64,000 nt of DNA from contig MU055016.1 in NCBI GenBank assembly GCA_013239625.1, forward strand, positions 172,867 through 236,866. Direction: 5' to 3'. This document shows, in pieces, positions 43,101 through 46,002 of the stretch. Both the position numbers and the translations under genes were made by a program. The notes under the pieces were generated by a model, which saw only the letters and a program-made list of their open reading frames with translations, had not been told where the DNA came from and made no database searches. This DNA is from Lama guanicoe. Lineage: Eukaryota. Position 1 is the first letter of the stretch, and each line of letters opens with the position of its first letter.

Positions 43101-46002
43101 TTGTGCTCCTGAAGAACGGGGCCAACAAAGACATGCAGAACAACAAGGTGGGTGGGGGGCACTGGCTGGTGAGTCACTTCCCCTAGCGCCCTTCCTGATC
43201 GTGGGACGCCCCCAAGCTGGTGACTTCAGCTCCAGGAGAACCTCTGGGCACTTAGACGCAGACTCCTCAGCGGGGTGCCTTGTGTCGTGGGCTCTCTCCC
43301 TTCATTTCGTATCTACAGGTCCCCTCCCAAGTGCGGGGCGTGGGTCCCAGCAGTGGATGGGTGGCTGCAGCTGTCCTGTCTGTGTCACTGTGACCTGGAC
43401 CTCATCCTCTGTTCTTGGCTGTCACCAGGCAGGGCGGGGGGTGACCCAGATGGTGCAAATTGAGCTGAGGCTTGTGGGGGTGGGGGGCTCTGCATTCTGA
43501 GGTCCTCAGTTGGAAATGCAAGGGCCGCCTTGCTACACATGGACTAGCCTCTTGTCTTGCTCAGCATCGCCATGATCTGTCCCTGAGGCTAAGGAAGCTC
43601 TTCCCAACCCCAGTCTGACCCCGCATCTCCTGAACCTACCTTGGATTCCTCTGTGTGCCAAGCCCCACCCCACACTTCACTGGCCTATGGCTGCATTTCA
43701 AATGGGTCTCCCTCTCACCTGGGTGAGGGAACACTGAGTGCCCAGTGGGGCTGAGGCATGATCCCACCTCCTCCTGGGGAGGCTGAGCCTCAGAGACGGA
43801 GGGTCTGGCCAAAGGGACTGCCATGGTATGGCAGCAGCCGTGGCCACGGCCTTGTGTGTACCAGGCAGACACCATCGGGTCTCACCCTCCACACAGCAGC
43901 CTGGCAGGGATACGAGGCATGTCTGCTATGCAGATGAGGAAACTGAGACCCAGGGGAGGAGCTAAGATGTCAGTGTCCCTCAGGGACCATCCAGTGCCCA
44001 TAGATGCTCAGATACCCACGTCCCTGAAATTGCGGCCATACTTGCATCTGCGCCATTTTGGAGGGAGGGAAGAGGGGCCACGGCTTAACTTTCCAGTGGA
44101 GTCTGCGACCCTACAGGGCAAAGCCTTACTGATTAAGAATATAGGATCCCACAGACCACCTCTGGGTGGGTCTTAAAAGATGTAGTTAAGGTGTTTAAGG
44201 CTTTTTTTTTAAGACTTAACAGTCCAGGTAGAACACTGGAGAGGGTCCACAGCAGGGAGGTGGGGATCAAACTGCTGGTTCCTCTAGTGAGTGACAGGGC
44301 ATTGATGGACCACTGGTCAGGGGACTCCAGGGACGGGGTGAGGAAGGGGTGCTCAGGCACCTGCAGCTGGTGGCTGGGCGTGGTGTCCACGGGCGAGGAG
44401 GAGTAGCTGTGCTGCGAGGGCAGCGTCAGGAACTGGGCAGTGGTCATGGGTGGGGTGACCATGATGAGGGTGACCCGCTCACCTGCTCCCTGTCCATTCC
44501 CCCAGGAGGAGACGCCATTGTTCCTGGCCGCGCGGGAGGGCAGCTACGAGACCGCCAAGGTGTTGCTAGACCATTTCGCCAACCGGGACATCACAGACCA
44601 CATGGACCGCCTGCCTCGCGACATCGCACAGGAGCGCATGCACCACGACATCGTGCGGCTGCTGGATGAGTACAGCCTGGTGCGCAGTCCCCAGCTGCAC
44701 GGCGCCGCCCTGGGTGGCGCGCCCACCCTGTCTCCCCCGCTCTGCTCACCCAACGGCTACCTGGGCAACCTGAAGCCGACAGTGCAGGGCAAGAAGGCCC
44801 GCAAGCCCAGCACCAAGGGCCTGGCCTGCGGCGGCAAGGAGGCCAAGGACCTCAAGGCGCGGAGGAAGAAGTCCCAGGACGGCAAGGGCTGCCTGCTGGA
44901 CAGCTCGAGCGTGCTGTCGCCCGTGGACTCCCTGGAGTCGCCCCACGGCTACCTGTCAGACGTGGCTTCCCCACCCCTCCTGCCCTCCCCTTTCCAGCAG
45001 TCTCCATCCATGCCCCTCAACCACCTGCCTGGCATGCCTGACACCCACCTGGGCGTCAGCCACCTGAGTGTGGCAGCCAAGCCCGAGATGGCGGCACTGA
45101 GCGGGGGTGGCCGGCTGGCCTTCGAGGCGGGACCCCCACGCCTCTCCCACCTGCCTGTGGCCTCCAGCACCAGCACAGTCCTGGGCAGCGGTGGTGGCGG
45201 CGCAGCCGTGAATTTCACTGTGAGTGGGGCCACAGGCTTGAACGGCCAGTGCGAGTGGCTGTCACGGCTGCAGAATGGCCTGGTGCCAAACCAGTACAAC
45301 CCATTGCGAGGGAGTGTGGCACCCGGCACCCTGAGCACACAGGCCCCCGCCCTCCAGCACGGCATGATGGGCCCGCTGCACAGCGGCCTGTCCGCCAGCA
45401 CCCTGTCCCAGATGATGGGCTACCAGGCCCTGCCCAACACGCGGCTGGCCACCCAGCCCCCCCTGGTGCAGACACAGCAGCAGAACCTACAGATGCCACA
45501 GCAGAGCCTGCAGCCTCAGCAGAGCCTGCCAGCGTCCAGCATCCAGCAGCCACAGAGCCTGCAGCCGCAGCCACCACAGCCACTCCTCAGCGTGAGCTCG
45601 GCTGCTGGCAGCCACTTGGGCCGGAGCTTCCTTGGTGGGGAGCTAAGCCAGGCAGATGTGCAGCCCCTAGGCCCCAGCAGCCTGGCGGTGCACACCGTCC
45701 TGCCACAGGATGGCCAGGTCCTGCCCACATCACTGCCGTCCGCGCTGGCCCCGCCCATGACCACTGCCCAGTTCCTCACGCCGCCCTCCCAGCATAGCTA
45801 CTCCTCCTCGCCGGTGGACAACACACCCAGCCACCAGCTGCAGGTGCCTGAGCACCCCTTCCTCACCCCGTCCCCAGAGTCCCCTGACCAGTGGTCCAGC
45901 TCATCGCCACATTCCAACATCTCCGATTGGTCCGAGGGCATCTCCAGCCCGCCCACCAGCATGCAGTCCCAGGTCACCCACATTCCGGAGGCGTTCAAGT
46001 AA
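227..46002 (+). CDS. NOTCH1: NOTCH1 whole spliced CDS, 34 coding exons, 7677 nt, about 2558 aa (signal peptide, 36 EGF repeats, 3 LNR, HD, TM, RAM, ANK, TAD, PEST)
   Basis: Exons joined by hand at GT-AG boundaries give one open frame: [15 protein letters not shown]..., EGF repeats, LNR, furin [32 protein letters not shown], ankyrin repeats, C-terminus ...IPEAFK*. Exon sizes match the mammalian NOTCH1 pattern as recalled. Confidence 0.99.
2029..2110 (+). CDS. NOTCH1: NOTCH1 exon 2 (EGF1)
   Basis: cttcccag| [26 protein letters not shown] |gtgagt; 82 nt. Confidence 0.96.
3405..3452. repeat. (GT)17 microsatellite with degenerate tail
   Basis: Directly visible. Confidence 0.97.
7405..7730 (-). 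mobile_element. Old L1 (L1M-type) 3' fragment, antisense
   Basis: Typical antisense L1M 3'UTR text (…ggcatttggtacattcacaaggttgtagaactgtcacc…gatttacctgttctggacacttcac…). Confidence 0.6.
13259..13823. repeat. Tandem duplication, 283 + 282 bp units (13259-13541, 13542-13823)
   Basis: Units identical except C8 versus C7 in one homopolymer. Confidence 0.97.
20225..20345 (-). mobile_element. Short L1M 3' fragment, antisense
   Basis: …ttaaagtgtacagttcagtggcattggcacattc… resembles the L1MB 3' end. Confidence 0.5.
20472..20734 (+). CDS. NOTCH1: NOTCH1 exon 3
   Basis: [16 protein letters not shown]...CPPGWS; 263 nt, AG/GT flanks. Confidence 0.96.
21322..21660 (+). CDS. NOTCH1: NOTCH1 exon 4
   Basis: [14 protein letters not shown]...HECACLP; 339 nt. 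Confidence 0.97.
23990..24112 (+). CDS. NOTCH1: NOTCH1 exon 5
   Basis: [18 protein letters not shown]...PPEWT; 123 nt. Confidence 0.97.
24586..24819 (+). CDS. NOTCH1: NOTCH1 exon 6
   Basis: [17 protein letters not shown]...CPHGRT; 234 nt. Confidence 0.97.
25152..25307 (+). CDS. NOTCH1: NOTCH1 exon 7
   Basis: [14 protein letters not shown]...DVDECSL; 156 nt. Confidence 0.97.
25506..25691 (+). CDS. NOTCH1: NOTCH1 exon 8 (EGF11-12 ligand-binding core)
   Basis: [10 protein letters not shown]...[20 protein letters not shown]; 186 nt. Confidence 0.97.
26042..26155 (+). CDS. NOTCH1: NOTCH1 exon 9
   Basis: [18 protein letters not shown]...ECPT; 114 nt. Confidence 0.97.
26885..26998 (+). CDS. NOTCH1: NOTCH1 exon 10
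   Basis: [18 protein letters not shown]...CVCTE; 114 nt. Confidence 0.97.
27299..27532 (+). CDS. NOTCH1: NOTCH1 exon 11 (partly an N gap)
   Basis: [32 protein letters not shown], then 132 N, then ACAG|gtgcct; 234 nt. Confidence 0.9.
27397..27528. other. Assembly gap (132 N) inside NOTCH1 exon 11
   Basis: N run. Confidence 0.99.
27605..27715 (+). CDS. NOTCH1: NOTCH1 exon 12
   Basis: [15 protein letters not shown]...EPGYT; 111 nt. Confidence 0.97.
28251..28443 (+). CDS. NOTCH1: NOTCH1 exon 13
   Basis: [15 protein letters not shown]...CRDGLN; 193 nt. Confidence 0.97.
28770..29545 (+). mobile_element. ERVL-type solo LTR, MER21-like, in intron 13
   Basis: Motifs recalled from MER21B/C: gggagttcagagagcttccgggctggtgaac, gagttctgtgagccgttcc, ggtcagaagtgcaggtgacaacttgggacttg, gggactgagcccttaacctgtgggg; ends approximate. 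Confidence 0.7.
29877..30022 (+). CDS. NOTCH1: NOTCH1 exon 14
   Basis: [14 protein letters not shown]...CREGFS; 146 nt. Confidence 0.97.
30197..30310 (+). CDS. NOTCH1: NOTCH1 exon 15
   Basis: [15 protein letters not shown]...CLLPYT; 114 nt. Confidence 0.97.
31832..31951 (+). CDS. NOTCH1: NOTCH1 exon 16
   Basis: [10 protein letters not shown]...CPTGWQ; 120 nt. Confidence 0.97.
32310..32462 (+). CDS. NOTCH1: NOTCH1 exon 17
   Basis: [15 protein letters not shown]...DIDDCRP; 153 nt. Confidence 0.97.
33207..33435 (+). CDS. NOTCH1: NOTCH1 exon 18
   Basis: [17 protein letters not shown]...NTPDCTE; 229 nt. Confidence 0.97.
34100..34301 (+). CDS. NOTCH1: NOTCH1 exon 19
   Basis: [15 protein letters not shown]...GYTGLNCQ; 202 nt. 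Confidence 0.97.
34916..35069 (+). CDS. NOTCH1: NOTCH1 exon 20
   Basis: [11 protein letters not shown]...SCEVAAWQQ; 154 nt. Confidence 0.97.
35160..35344 (+). CDS. NOTCH1: NOTCH1 exon 21
   Basis: [13 protein letters not shown]...GGYSCE; 185 nt. Confidence 0.97.
35833..35965 (+). CDS. NOTCH1: NOTCH1 exon 22
   Basis: [17 protein letters not shown]...CPRGTQ; 133 nt. Confidence 0.97.
36184..36441 (+). CDS. NOTCH1: NOTCH1 exon 23
   Basis: [10 protein letters not shown]...CRAGHT; 258 nt. Confidence 0.97.
36518..36630 (+). CDS. NOTCH1: NOTCH1 exon 24
   Basis: [15 protein letters not shown]...CKCPA; 113 nt. Confidence 0.97.
36825..37000 (-). mobile_element. Degraded L1MC/MD-like fragment in intron 24
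   Basis: …agcagcttcagggttatagaaaag…agagtccccacgcaccc… resembles antisense L1MC. Confidence 0.45.
37299..37870 (+). CDS. NOTCH1: NOTCH1 exon 25 (EGF35-36, LNR-A/B)
   Basis: [10 protein letters not shown]...CGWDGGDC...[13 protein letters not shown]; 572 nt. Confidence 0.97.
38168..38596 (+). CDS. NOTCH1: NOTCH1 exon 26 (LNR-C, HD-N, S1 furin site)
   Basis: [16 protein letters not shown]...[14 protein letters not shown]; 429 nt. Confidence 0.97.
39180..39328 (+). CDS. NOTCH1: NOTCH1 exon 27 (HD-C, S2 site)
   Basis: [12 protein letters not shown]...PYKIEAVQ; 149 nt. Confidence 0.97.
39737..39956. other. Assembly gap (220 N) in intron 27
   Basis: N run. Confidence 0.99.
40223..40439 (+). CDS. 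NOTCH1: NOTCH1 exon 28 (TM, S3 site, RAM WFP motif)
   Basis: [50 protein letters not shown]...; donor GTTAGT; 217 nt. Confidence 0.97.
40578..40665 (+). CDS. NOTCH1: NOTCH1 exon 29
   Basis: [29 protein letters not shown]; 88 nt. Confidence 0.97.
40757..40922 (+). CDS. NOTCH1: NOTCH1 exon 30
   Basis: [19 protein letters not shown]...DVNVRGP; 166 nt. Confidence 0.97.
41532..41827 (+). CDS. NOTCH1: NOTCH1 exon 31 (ankyrin repeats)
   Basis: [10 protein letters not shown]...[11 protein letters not shown]...ADAQGVFQ; 296 nt. Confidence 0.97.
42383..42473 (-). mobile_element. tRNA-derived SINE (Vic-1-like) in intron 31
   Basis: Reverse complement GGGTGTAGCTCAGTGGTAGAGC...GGTTCAATCCCCAGCACCTCC plus A-rich tail; Pol III A and B boxes. 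Confidence 0.8.
42814..42961 (+). CDS. NOTCH1: NOTCH1 exon 32 (ankyrin repeats)
   Basis: [27 protein letters not shown]...VDDL; 148 nt. Confidence 0.97.
43050..43147 (+). CDS. NOTCH1: NOTCH1 exon 33 (ankyrin repeats)
   Basis: [32 protein letters not shown]; 98 nt. Confidence 0.97.
44306..44450 (-). repeat. Inverted intronic copy of NOTCH1 exon-34 PEST-coding sequence (partner arm 45754-45898)
   Basis: Manual ungapped alignment of the reverse complement: 136/145 identical; minus frame reads [48 protein letters not shown]. Confidence 0.98.
44506..46002 (+). CDS. NOTCH1: NOTCH1 exon 34 coding part (last ANK repeats, NLS, TAD, Q-rich region, PEST)
   Basis: cccag|[18 protein letters not shown]...[21 protein letters not shown]...IPEAFK TAA. 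Confidence 0.98.

Follow-up and report, generated by a model that had tools for sequence, protein, structure and literature searches.

The window analysed here, a 64-kb stretch of Lama guanicoe DNA, contains the last intron and the terminal exon of NOTCH1; all features described below are given on its + strand. In our reading of the sequence, exon 33 ends with ...KDMQNNK at position 43147 and is followed by gt. The last intron, intron 33, spans 43148–44505 (1358 nt, GT...AG), and exon 34 starts with EETPLF at position 44506, the KDMQNNK-EETPLF junction being confirmed by cDNA-derived homologue proteins. The coding part of exon 34 (44506–46002) comprises 498 codons and a stop at 46000–46002, and its product is identical to NOTCH1 of Camelus dromedarius at 488 of 498 positions. 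Sequence reading and alignment to a ruminant NOTCH1 contig, L001, which groups with a Cervus elaphus protein, delineate the 3' end of the intron (44478–44505): a candidate branch point CTCAC, assigned by consensus only (A at 44481), a pyrimidine tract and the acceptor AG. All three are intact, conserved with L001 and situated 3' of the insertion described below. Downstream of the stop, AATAAA at 47644–47649 is the candidate main poly(A) signal, and another AATAAA at 47227 is a second candidate, both recognised by motif only. No Rfam family matched at its gathering score in 43149–47500.

Intron 33 carries an inverted copy of a part of exon 34. Repeat search and in-register comparison demonstrated that 44306–44455 (the intronic arm) is the ungapped reverse complement of 45749–45898 (the exonic arm, from which the copy was taken), with 140 of 150 nt identical (93%) and 1293 nt between the two arms; a match of such length and identity cannot be a product of chance. 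The pair had been noticed in a sequence-only reading as 145 nt with 136 identities, which proved to be a subset of the full match. The 49-nt perfect core reported there is also present (44330–44378 pairs with 45826–45874), and it is not special in itself, since a perfect run of 49 nt is expected 18% of the time given 10 mismatches over 150 nt. The arm does lie just 5' of the last acceptor, at a distance of 48 nt from the AG (44504–44505) instead of the approximately 55 nt estimated previously. Among inverted repeats of at least 60 nt within 6 kb, this pair is the sole one in the whole window, where the copied segment occurs twice and no more.

Translation of 45749–45898 agrees with the earlier claim that the copied segment encodes PEST residues: it codes for 49 amino acids, running from PPMTTAQF to a closing stretch of 12 residues and including LTPSPES. 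The LTPSPES codons occupy 45862–45882; the motif is established as the FBXW7 phosphodegron, and its degron Thr is encoded by ACC (with the A at 45865). Bases 45862–45874 of this motif fall inside the perfect core (45826–45874), while the two mismatches at 45875–45876 affect the second Pro codon. The degron region of NOTCH1 is lost in T-ALL and CLL mutants.

Comparison with the intron 33 of another artiodactyl, proposed along with the original observation, revealed that the arm is absent from the ruminant. L001 aligns to the intron on both sides of the arm at 77.5% identity, first as far as 44295 and then resuming at about 44470 and running to the AG; it lacks the approximately 179 nt between (44296–44474), which consist of filler, arm and filler. 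Neither an arm nor a reverse-strand PEST match was found in L001, and L002 and L003 were likewise devoid of an arm or a reverse-strand copy. Moreover, the arm-coded peptide was found in none of six mammal-level exon-34 ORFs reaching 63–180 nt into the intron. The orthologous outgroup site being empty, the inverted copy is, as judged from these alignments, a derived, lineage-specific insertion.

The borders of the insertion deserve a separate comment. On the left, 44281–44295 is orthologous to ruminant sequence ending in ...GTGAC, and is followed by a 10-nt filler (44296–44305) homologous neither to L001 nor to the in-register exon. On the right, the 19 nt following the arm (44456–44474) also end in GTGAC and loosely resemble the same ruminant target over 15–19 nt, albeit in a weak alignment. 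Thus, 44281–44295 and 44456–44474 may be the left and right copies of a degenerate target-site duplication. No convincing local template was found for either the 10-nt or the 19-nt filler.

We polarised the 10 differences between arm and exon using L001 as an outgroup. Five of them arose in the arm, four in the exon and one is ambiguous. Read in the PEST frame, three of the five arm changes would replace an amino acid, while all four exon changes are synonymous ones at third positions. Both copies in the window share seven states against L001, so the template was the exon of this very lineage. Eight of the 10 differences break pairing between the arms, two keep it as G.U, and none is compensatory. 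Since most differences are disruptive, we see no sign of selection for a duplex, and the divergence pattern resembles that of a free-running copy. The arm changed at 3.3–4.0% of sites as compared with 4–5 changes in approximately 50 synonymous exon positions; such a difference might point to constraint or gene conversion, although it is not significant (binomial P about 0.06–0.13, own estimate).

Such evidence induces us to favour, with a probability of roughly 60%, an inverted insertion that arose long ago on the camelid branch by template switching or a repair-type process and is now probably a tolerated passenger. The mechanism we infer from the anatomy of the insertion alone. In a single DNA-level event during replication or break repair, synthesis would have jumped approximately 1.45 kb to the opposite strand, used 150 nt of exon 34 as an inverted template and then returned, leaving as a scar, now fixed, an insertion of about 179 nt in intron 33, just 5' of the branch point. 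Afterwards, the arm would have drifted as non-coding DNA, with the exon changing at synonymous sites only, and most likely persists because it is tolerated as a passenger. Pre-mRNA molecules still containing intron 33 once Pol II passes 45898 could form a duplex of approximately 150 bp, which would serve ADAR as an incidental and promiscuous substrate on unspliced molecules, leaving mature NOTCH1 affected little, if at all.

That template switching can generate inverted copies and hairpins in one step has been documented (Loytynoja & Goldman 2017, PMC5453318; Monttinen & Loytynoja 2022, PMC8794818). As in those mutations, a nearby segment of the same chromosome (here, about 1.45 kb downstream) was reverse-complemented into the same locus, apparently at once, and a long, perfect stem would have arisen instantly in transcripts spanning both copies, with no selection needed. 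Counting against this parallel, the published events are described as short and local, whereas the NOTCH1 copy is 150 nt long, comes from approximately 1.45 kb away and is accompanied by junction fillers and a possible 15–19-nt duplication. In its scale, the insertion is intermediate between short template switches and FoSTeS/MMBIR rearrangements, the latter being kilobase-scale.

The junctions leave some room for another route, in which a free fragment of exon-34 DNA or cDNA entered a staggered break through end joining, or through an L1-endonuclease-type insertion, instead of a polymerase switch. A target-site duplication of 15–19 nt would be of a length that L1-type staggered nicks produce, and both junctions contain untemplated-looking filler. 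However, the duplication is degenerate and uncertain, and a source so near, only about 1.45 kb off on the same chromosome, speaks for a local template jump. Furthermore, the fragment is internal to the CDS, unspliced and without a poly(A) tail. In general, none of the hallmarks of a transposon or retrocopy that we looked for (poly(A) tail, terminal repeats, spliced source, many copies, the last counted in the window) was detected at the arm, so that the earlier statement that it is not a transposon holds: the arm derives from within the CDS, lacks an A-tail and is present in the window in only two copies. We therefore consider fragment capture rather unlikely.

Whatever its origin, the insertion might have been exapted, either as an ADAR editing-complementary sequence (ECS) recoding PEST and degron codons or as a modulator of last-intron removal, thereby tuning NICD stability and NOTCH1 output in camelids. 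In the minimum-free-energy fold of 44250–45950, the arms pair almost fully, as the sequence-only reading anticipated, with 143 of 150 pairs in register and a predicted energy of -331.7 kcal/mol. The intronic arm ends 23 nt 5' of the candidate branch point, and transcription passes the exonic arm about 1.75 kb before it reaches the likely poly(A) signal. Definition of the terminal exon is known to await 3' end processing; if this applies here, both arms can coexist in one transcript, because the exonic arm precedes the poly(A) signal. Reading A as G would change the encoded residue at 23 of the 26 adenosines in the exonic arm, among them the one in the degron Thr codon. In addition, word shares in genomic reads suggest that the arm is present in several organisms.

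Other observations count against exaptation. Whereas intron-exon complementarity able to form a helix exists in the predicted fold, the pairing is neither conserved nor compensated: the arm is absent from the ruminant and other vertebrates, and disruptive differences prevail. A.C mismatches, the favoured ADAR context, number two, and both sit at synonymous third positions. The favoured 5' U precedes only two of the 26 exonic-arm adenosines, and the disfavoured 5' G precedes five. Promiscuous recoding of the degron of a dosage-sensitive proto-oncogene would also more likely be harmful. Keeping in mind the lineage-specific insertion, three non-synonymous changes among five in the arm, eight unpaired differences among 10 and no compensatory ones, the previous suggestion of an ECS aimed at the protein's off-switch finds no support here, and exaptation of the duplex in the broader sense appears unlikely. 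Its most specific version, a co-opted camelid duplex in which ADAR edits the degron Thr (ACC to GCC-like, at 45865) in late-spliced transcripts or the helix acts as a gate on intron-33 splicing, is very doubtful. A more modest role for the inverted copy would be that of a possible incidental ADAR substrate.

With the GRIA2 Q/R-site ECS, the NOTCH1 arm shares an intronic sequence pairing with a coding exon in pre-mRNA, so that any effect must precede splicing. Yet classical ECS helices are short, imperfect, long conserved and site-selective, and the ECS is usually downstream of the edited exon; the NOTCH1 arm, in contrast, is 150 bp long, near-perfect, upstream and lineage-specific, and its pairing is not conserved. 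Inverted Alu/SINE pairs, located in introns and UTRs, make up the bulk of ADAR1 substrates and likewise give rise to long, near-perfect duplexes within one pre-mRNA, where promiscuous editing is expected; their arms, however, are transposons and rarely coding, whereas one of the NOTCH1 arms is essential coding sequence. Finally, plant MIRNA genes have been proposed to originate through inverted duplication (PMC3237417; bioRxiv 10.1101/682591), and there too part of a gene's own coding sequence, duplicated in inverted orientation, gives a long hairpin fully complementary to the gene. Such a hairpin is nevertheless a separate transcription unit subject to Dicer-like processing, whereas the NOTCH1 arms share one mammalian pre-mRNA, with a splice site between them. 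In the literature we searched, no prior description of the NOTCH1 element was found, as had been supposed.

The intronic arm might also act by its own sequence, as a G-rich intronic splicing element of the hnRNP H/F type near the 3' splice site. G makes up 48% of the arm on the pre-mRNA strand, and its ten G-runs amount to a density of 6.7 per 100 nt as compared with 3.0 elsewhere in the intron; a regular-expression scan places a canonical G-quadruplex motif inside it (44320–44349), and folded alone the arm reaches a predicted -65.9 kcal/mol, which competes with long-range pairing. But such G-richness follows automatically from being antisense to a proline/serine-rich coding sequence, and we regard this role as highly improbable. 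That the arm is an assembly artefact, missing from the animal's genome and from raw reads, is very unlikely, because by word shares 14 short-read DNA runs (six studies, five organisms) contain 0.95–0.96 of the sampled words, more than the 0.918 that a genome lacking the insert could reach at most (P about 0.01–0.04), and its 10 differences form a pattern (exon synonymous-only, arm mixed) needing millions of years.

If the duplex were co-opted after all, it would give camelids a built-in, tissue-dependent means to lengthen or shorten NICD half-life, and would represent a naturally evolved antisense guide against the off-switch of a proto-oncogene. If the element does nothing, it would give a helpful point of reference for the numerous long-range duplex candidates of this sort emerging from sequence scans. 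Should our preferred reading of a template-switch or repair-type insertion be right, the locus would be a clean and datable case of a local inverted templated insertion, placing 150 bp of antisense to an essential CDS in the same pre-mRNA, and tolerated in a dosage-sensitive gene even adjoining the branch point. Such insertions would be the raw material for editing-complementary sequences and regulatory hairpins, and the one in NOTCH1 might serve as a natural experiment on how mammalian cells cope with long intron-exon dsRNA over the degron.

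Intron 33 of NOTCH1 (43148-44505) contains, at 44306-44455, a reverse complement of the segment 45749-45898 of exon 34, which encodes PPMTTAQF... and lies in the PEST/degron part of the protein. The repeat search returned this pair as 150 nt long, ungapped, 93% complementary and spaced by 1293 nt, and the in-register comparison found 140 of 150 positions matching between the arms. The homology stops sharply at either end. These are the only two copies of the segment in the window, and across its whole 64 kb no other inverted repeat of at least 60 nt was found within a distance of 6 kb. 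The inverted copy announced by the sequence-only reading is therefore real, and so is its perfect 49-nt core (44330-44378 pairing with 45826-45874). However, with ten mismatches spread over 150 nt, an uninterrupted match of at least 49 nt is expected 18% of the time (P = 0.18), so the core has no extra meaning, and we rejected it as a special feature.

Exon 33 ends at 43147 (...KDMQNNK) and is followed by gt, and the coding part of exon 34 starts at 44506 (EETPLF...), directly behind the AG at 44504-44505, and runs to the stop codon at 46000-46002. This junction was confirmed by cDNA-derived homologues, in which KDMQNNK runs straight into EETPLF. The intronic arm indeed lies just upstream of the acceptor, whose AG begins 48 nt past the arm end rather than about 55 nt as first claimed. 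A candidate branch point matching the consensus (CTCAC, with its A at 44481) and a pyrimidine tract are both located between the arm and the AG. Exon 34 of the window is identical to NOTCH1 of Camelus dromedarius (KAB1280118.1, protein match P0167) at 488 of 498 positions, the differences being 8 residues and a GG indel; its final 100 residues agree without exception with XP_045373265.1, a C. bactrianus model of 160 aa that is itself a fragment in which part of exon 34 is skipped. These matches mark the window as camelid, and the ten differences suggest an animal other than the dromedary, possibly one of the New World camelids. The glutamine-rich stretch of exon 34 has imperfect tandem repeats of 18-21 nt (45469-45571, TRF scores 52-66), a region in which the window also departs from the protein of the dromedary. 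Runs of N in or adjoining the NOTCH1 region are found at 27397-27528, 39737-39956 and 52492-52627.

A metagenome scan, in which exon 34 alone was the query and no spliced or joined model was used, yielded four host-derived contigs, none of which was taken to be human. One of these, L001 (Ga0126362_10006041, 1-2403), carries the entire exon 34 (84% amino-acid identity) together with 690 nt of intron. Judging from its sequence, L001 is a ruminant NOTCH1, since its protein type groups with one from Cervus elaphus; its C-terminus is not of the primate type. Another contig, L002 (Ga0065711_1053015), represents a more distant vertebrate NOTCH1 with 72% amino-acid identity. Both are host DNA in metagenomes, not microbial, and they serve as outgroups. 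In the intron, L001 and the window share 77.5% identity as far as 44295; the alignment resumes at approximately 44470 and continues to the AG, leaving 44296-44474 with no counterpart in L001. Comparison with another artiodactyl, suggested by the sequence-only reading, thus found intron 33 aligned on both flanks and the arm absent. On the reverse strand, nothing matching the PEST segment was found in L001, L002 or a third contig, L003. Likewise, six mammal-level exon-34 ORFs that include 63-180 nt of intron sequence showed no arm-coded peptide in any frame. Among the six is P0005, which, like P0008 and P0019, has a primate-type C-terminus.

Because L001 aligns on both sides without 44296-44474, the alignment reveals in the window an insertion some 179 nt long, in three parts: a first filler of 10 nt (44296-44305), the inserted arm of 150 nt (44306-44455) and a stretch of 19 nt after it (44456-44474). 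This last stretch is loosely similar to the same target sequence as 44281-44295, so that the two may represent a degenerate target duplication, the alignment being weak; GTGAC ends both insertion borders. Looking nearby for sequence from which the fillers could have been copied gave nothing beyond 10-11-mers at chance level.

Using L001 as an outgroup, we polarised the ten differences between the arm and the exon. Five changes arose in the arm, three of which would alter a residue if read in the PEST frame (P to L twice and N to T once), while the four that arose in the exon are, every one, synonymous at third positions; one third-position change is ambiguous. Such a pattern is expected of a non-coding copy that drifts freely next to an exon under constraint. 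The divergence of the arm (3.3-4.0%), set against an intron distance to the ruminant of about 0.27 substitutions per site (Jukes-Cantor estimate), places the event about one quarter of the way back to the split between camelids and ruminants, and the synonymous changes in the exon point to an older date. The insertion would thus be tens of millions of years old (about 15-50 My), an estimate based on small counts.

The duplex between the intron and the exon might have a regulatory or ADAR-related role, as an editing-complementary sequence aimed at the degron. The thermodynamics of arm pairing are the only evidence that speaks for it: the cofold of the arms has an energy of -331.7 kcal/mol, and the minimum-free-energy structure of 44250-45950 contains 143 of the 150 in-register pairs, so the fold came out as predicted. 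The likely poly(A) signals at 47227 and 47644 imply that the exonic arm is transcribed well ahead of full terminal-exon definition, and it is plausible that both arms coexist in one pre-mRNA. The intronic arm by itself folds at -65.9 kcal/mol, which would put self-folding in kinetic competition with the long-range pairing. At the RNA level, the ten differences between the arms amount to two G.U wobbles and eight true mismatches, four of the latter being A.C, and no compensatory changes were found among them. The exonic arm has 26 adenosines, 23 of which would change the encoded residue on being read as G, among them the A of the degron Thr codon (45865). Their 5' neighbours include the favoured U only twice and the disfavoured G five times, and the A.C mismatches at exonic adenosines 45825 and 45876 are both synonymous. 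No Rfam match was found in 43149-47500. The proposal of an editing-complementary sequence is upheld as far as predicted stable pairing goes and fails in that this pairing is neither conserved nor compensated; conserved or compensated pairing is, along with editing and a duplex in vivo, a defining feature of such sequences, and the likeness of the NOTCH1 arms to them is one of geometry only. Overall, a regulatory or ADAR role appears quite unlikely.

Several other features of the arm might be mentioned here. On the pre-mRNA strand, it is 48% G, because it is the antisense of a proline- and serine-rich coding sequence; it has ten G-runs, twice as dense as those elsewhere in intron 33. A canonical G-quadruplex motif at 44320-44349, on the same strand, is no more than 185 nt away from the 3' splice site. 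On the minus strand, an ATG-initiated ORF of 109 aa (44133-44462) crosses the arm in the frame of the PEST sequence and continues into the intron. This ORF has no entry of its own in the protein collection, where its matches were NOTCH1 C-terminal fragments only (42-46% coverage). A protein search with the 520-aa exon-34 ORF gave no match above 85% identity, which indicates that the collection searched with it is without camelid contig ORFs.

Alternatively, the arm might have been created during assembly. This is probably not the case, as the pattern of divergence between arm and exon requires evolutionary time. Moreover, of 222 short sequence words sampled from 43900-46100, a share of 0.95-0.96 was present in fourteen DNA runs, which come from six studies and represent five coded organisms, whereas a genome without the insertion could reach 0.918 at most, given that 178 of 2171 31-mers exist only with it; word shares of this kind are indirect evidence. 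The chance that word sampling hides a missing insertion is about 0.01-0.04. For G and H, two organisms at a greater distance, the word shares were 0.37-0.41, which are uninformative on the arm. A paralogue or pseudogene as the source was rejected, since at seven further sites both copies in the window agree with each other and differ from L001, meaning that the arm has the derived states of its own lineage's exon. A transposon or retrocopy was rejected as well, for no hallmarks of either were found, in agreement with the initial claim.

The anatomy of the insertion agrees with that of template-switch mutations, in which nearby sequence is copied as its reverse complement and hairpins are made in one step (PMC5453318, PMC8794818), although the NOTCH1 copy is bigger and longer-range than the switches termed short-range. 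The inverted-duplication model of MIRNA origin in plants is a further analogue. Among the papers searched, none describes such a repeat in the last intron of NOTCH1, in line with the sequence-only reading, which knew of no description. Taken together, we favour, with a probability of roughly 0.6, a real and derived inverted templated insertion that arose on the camelid branch and has most likely persisted in NOTCH1 as a tolerated passenger.
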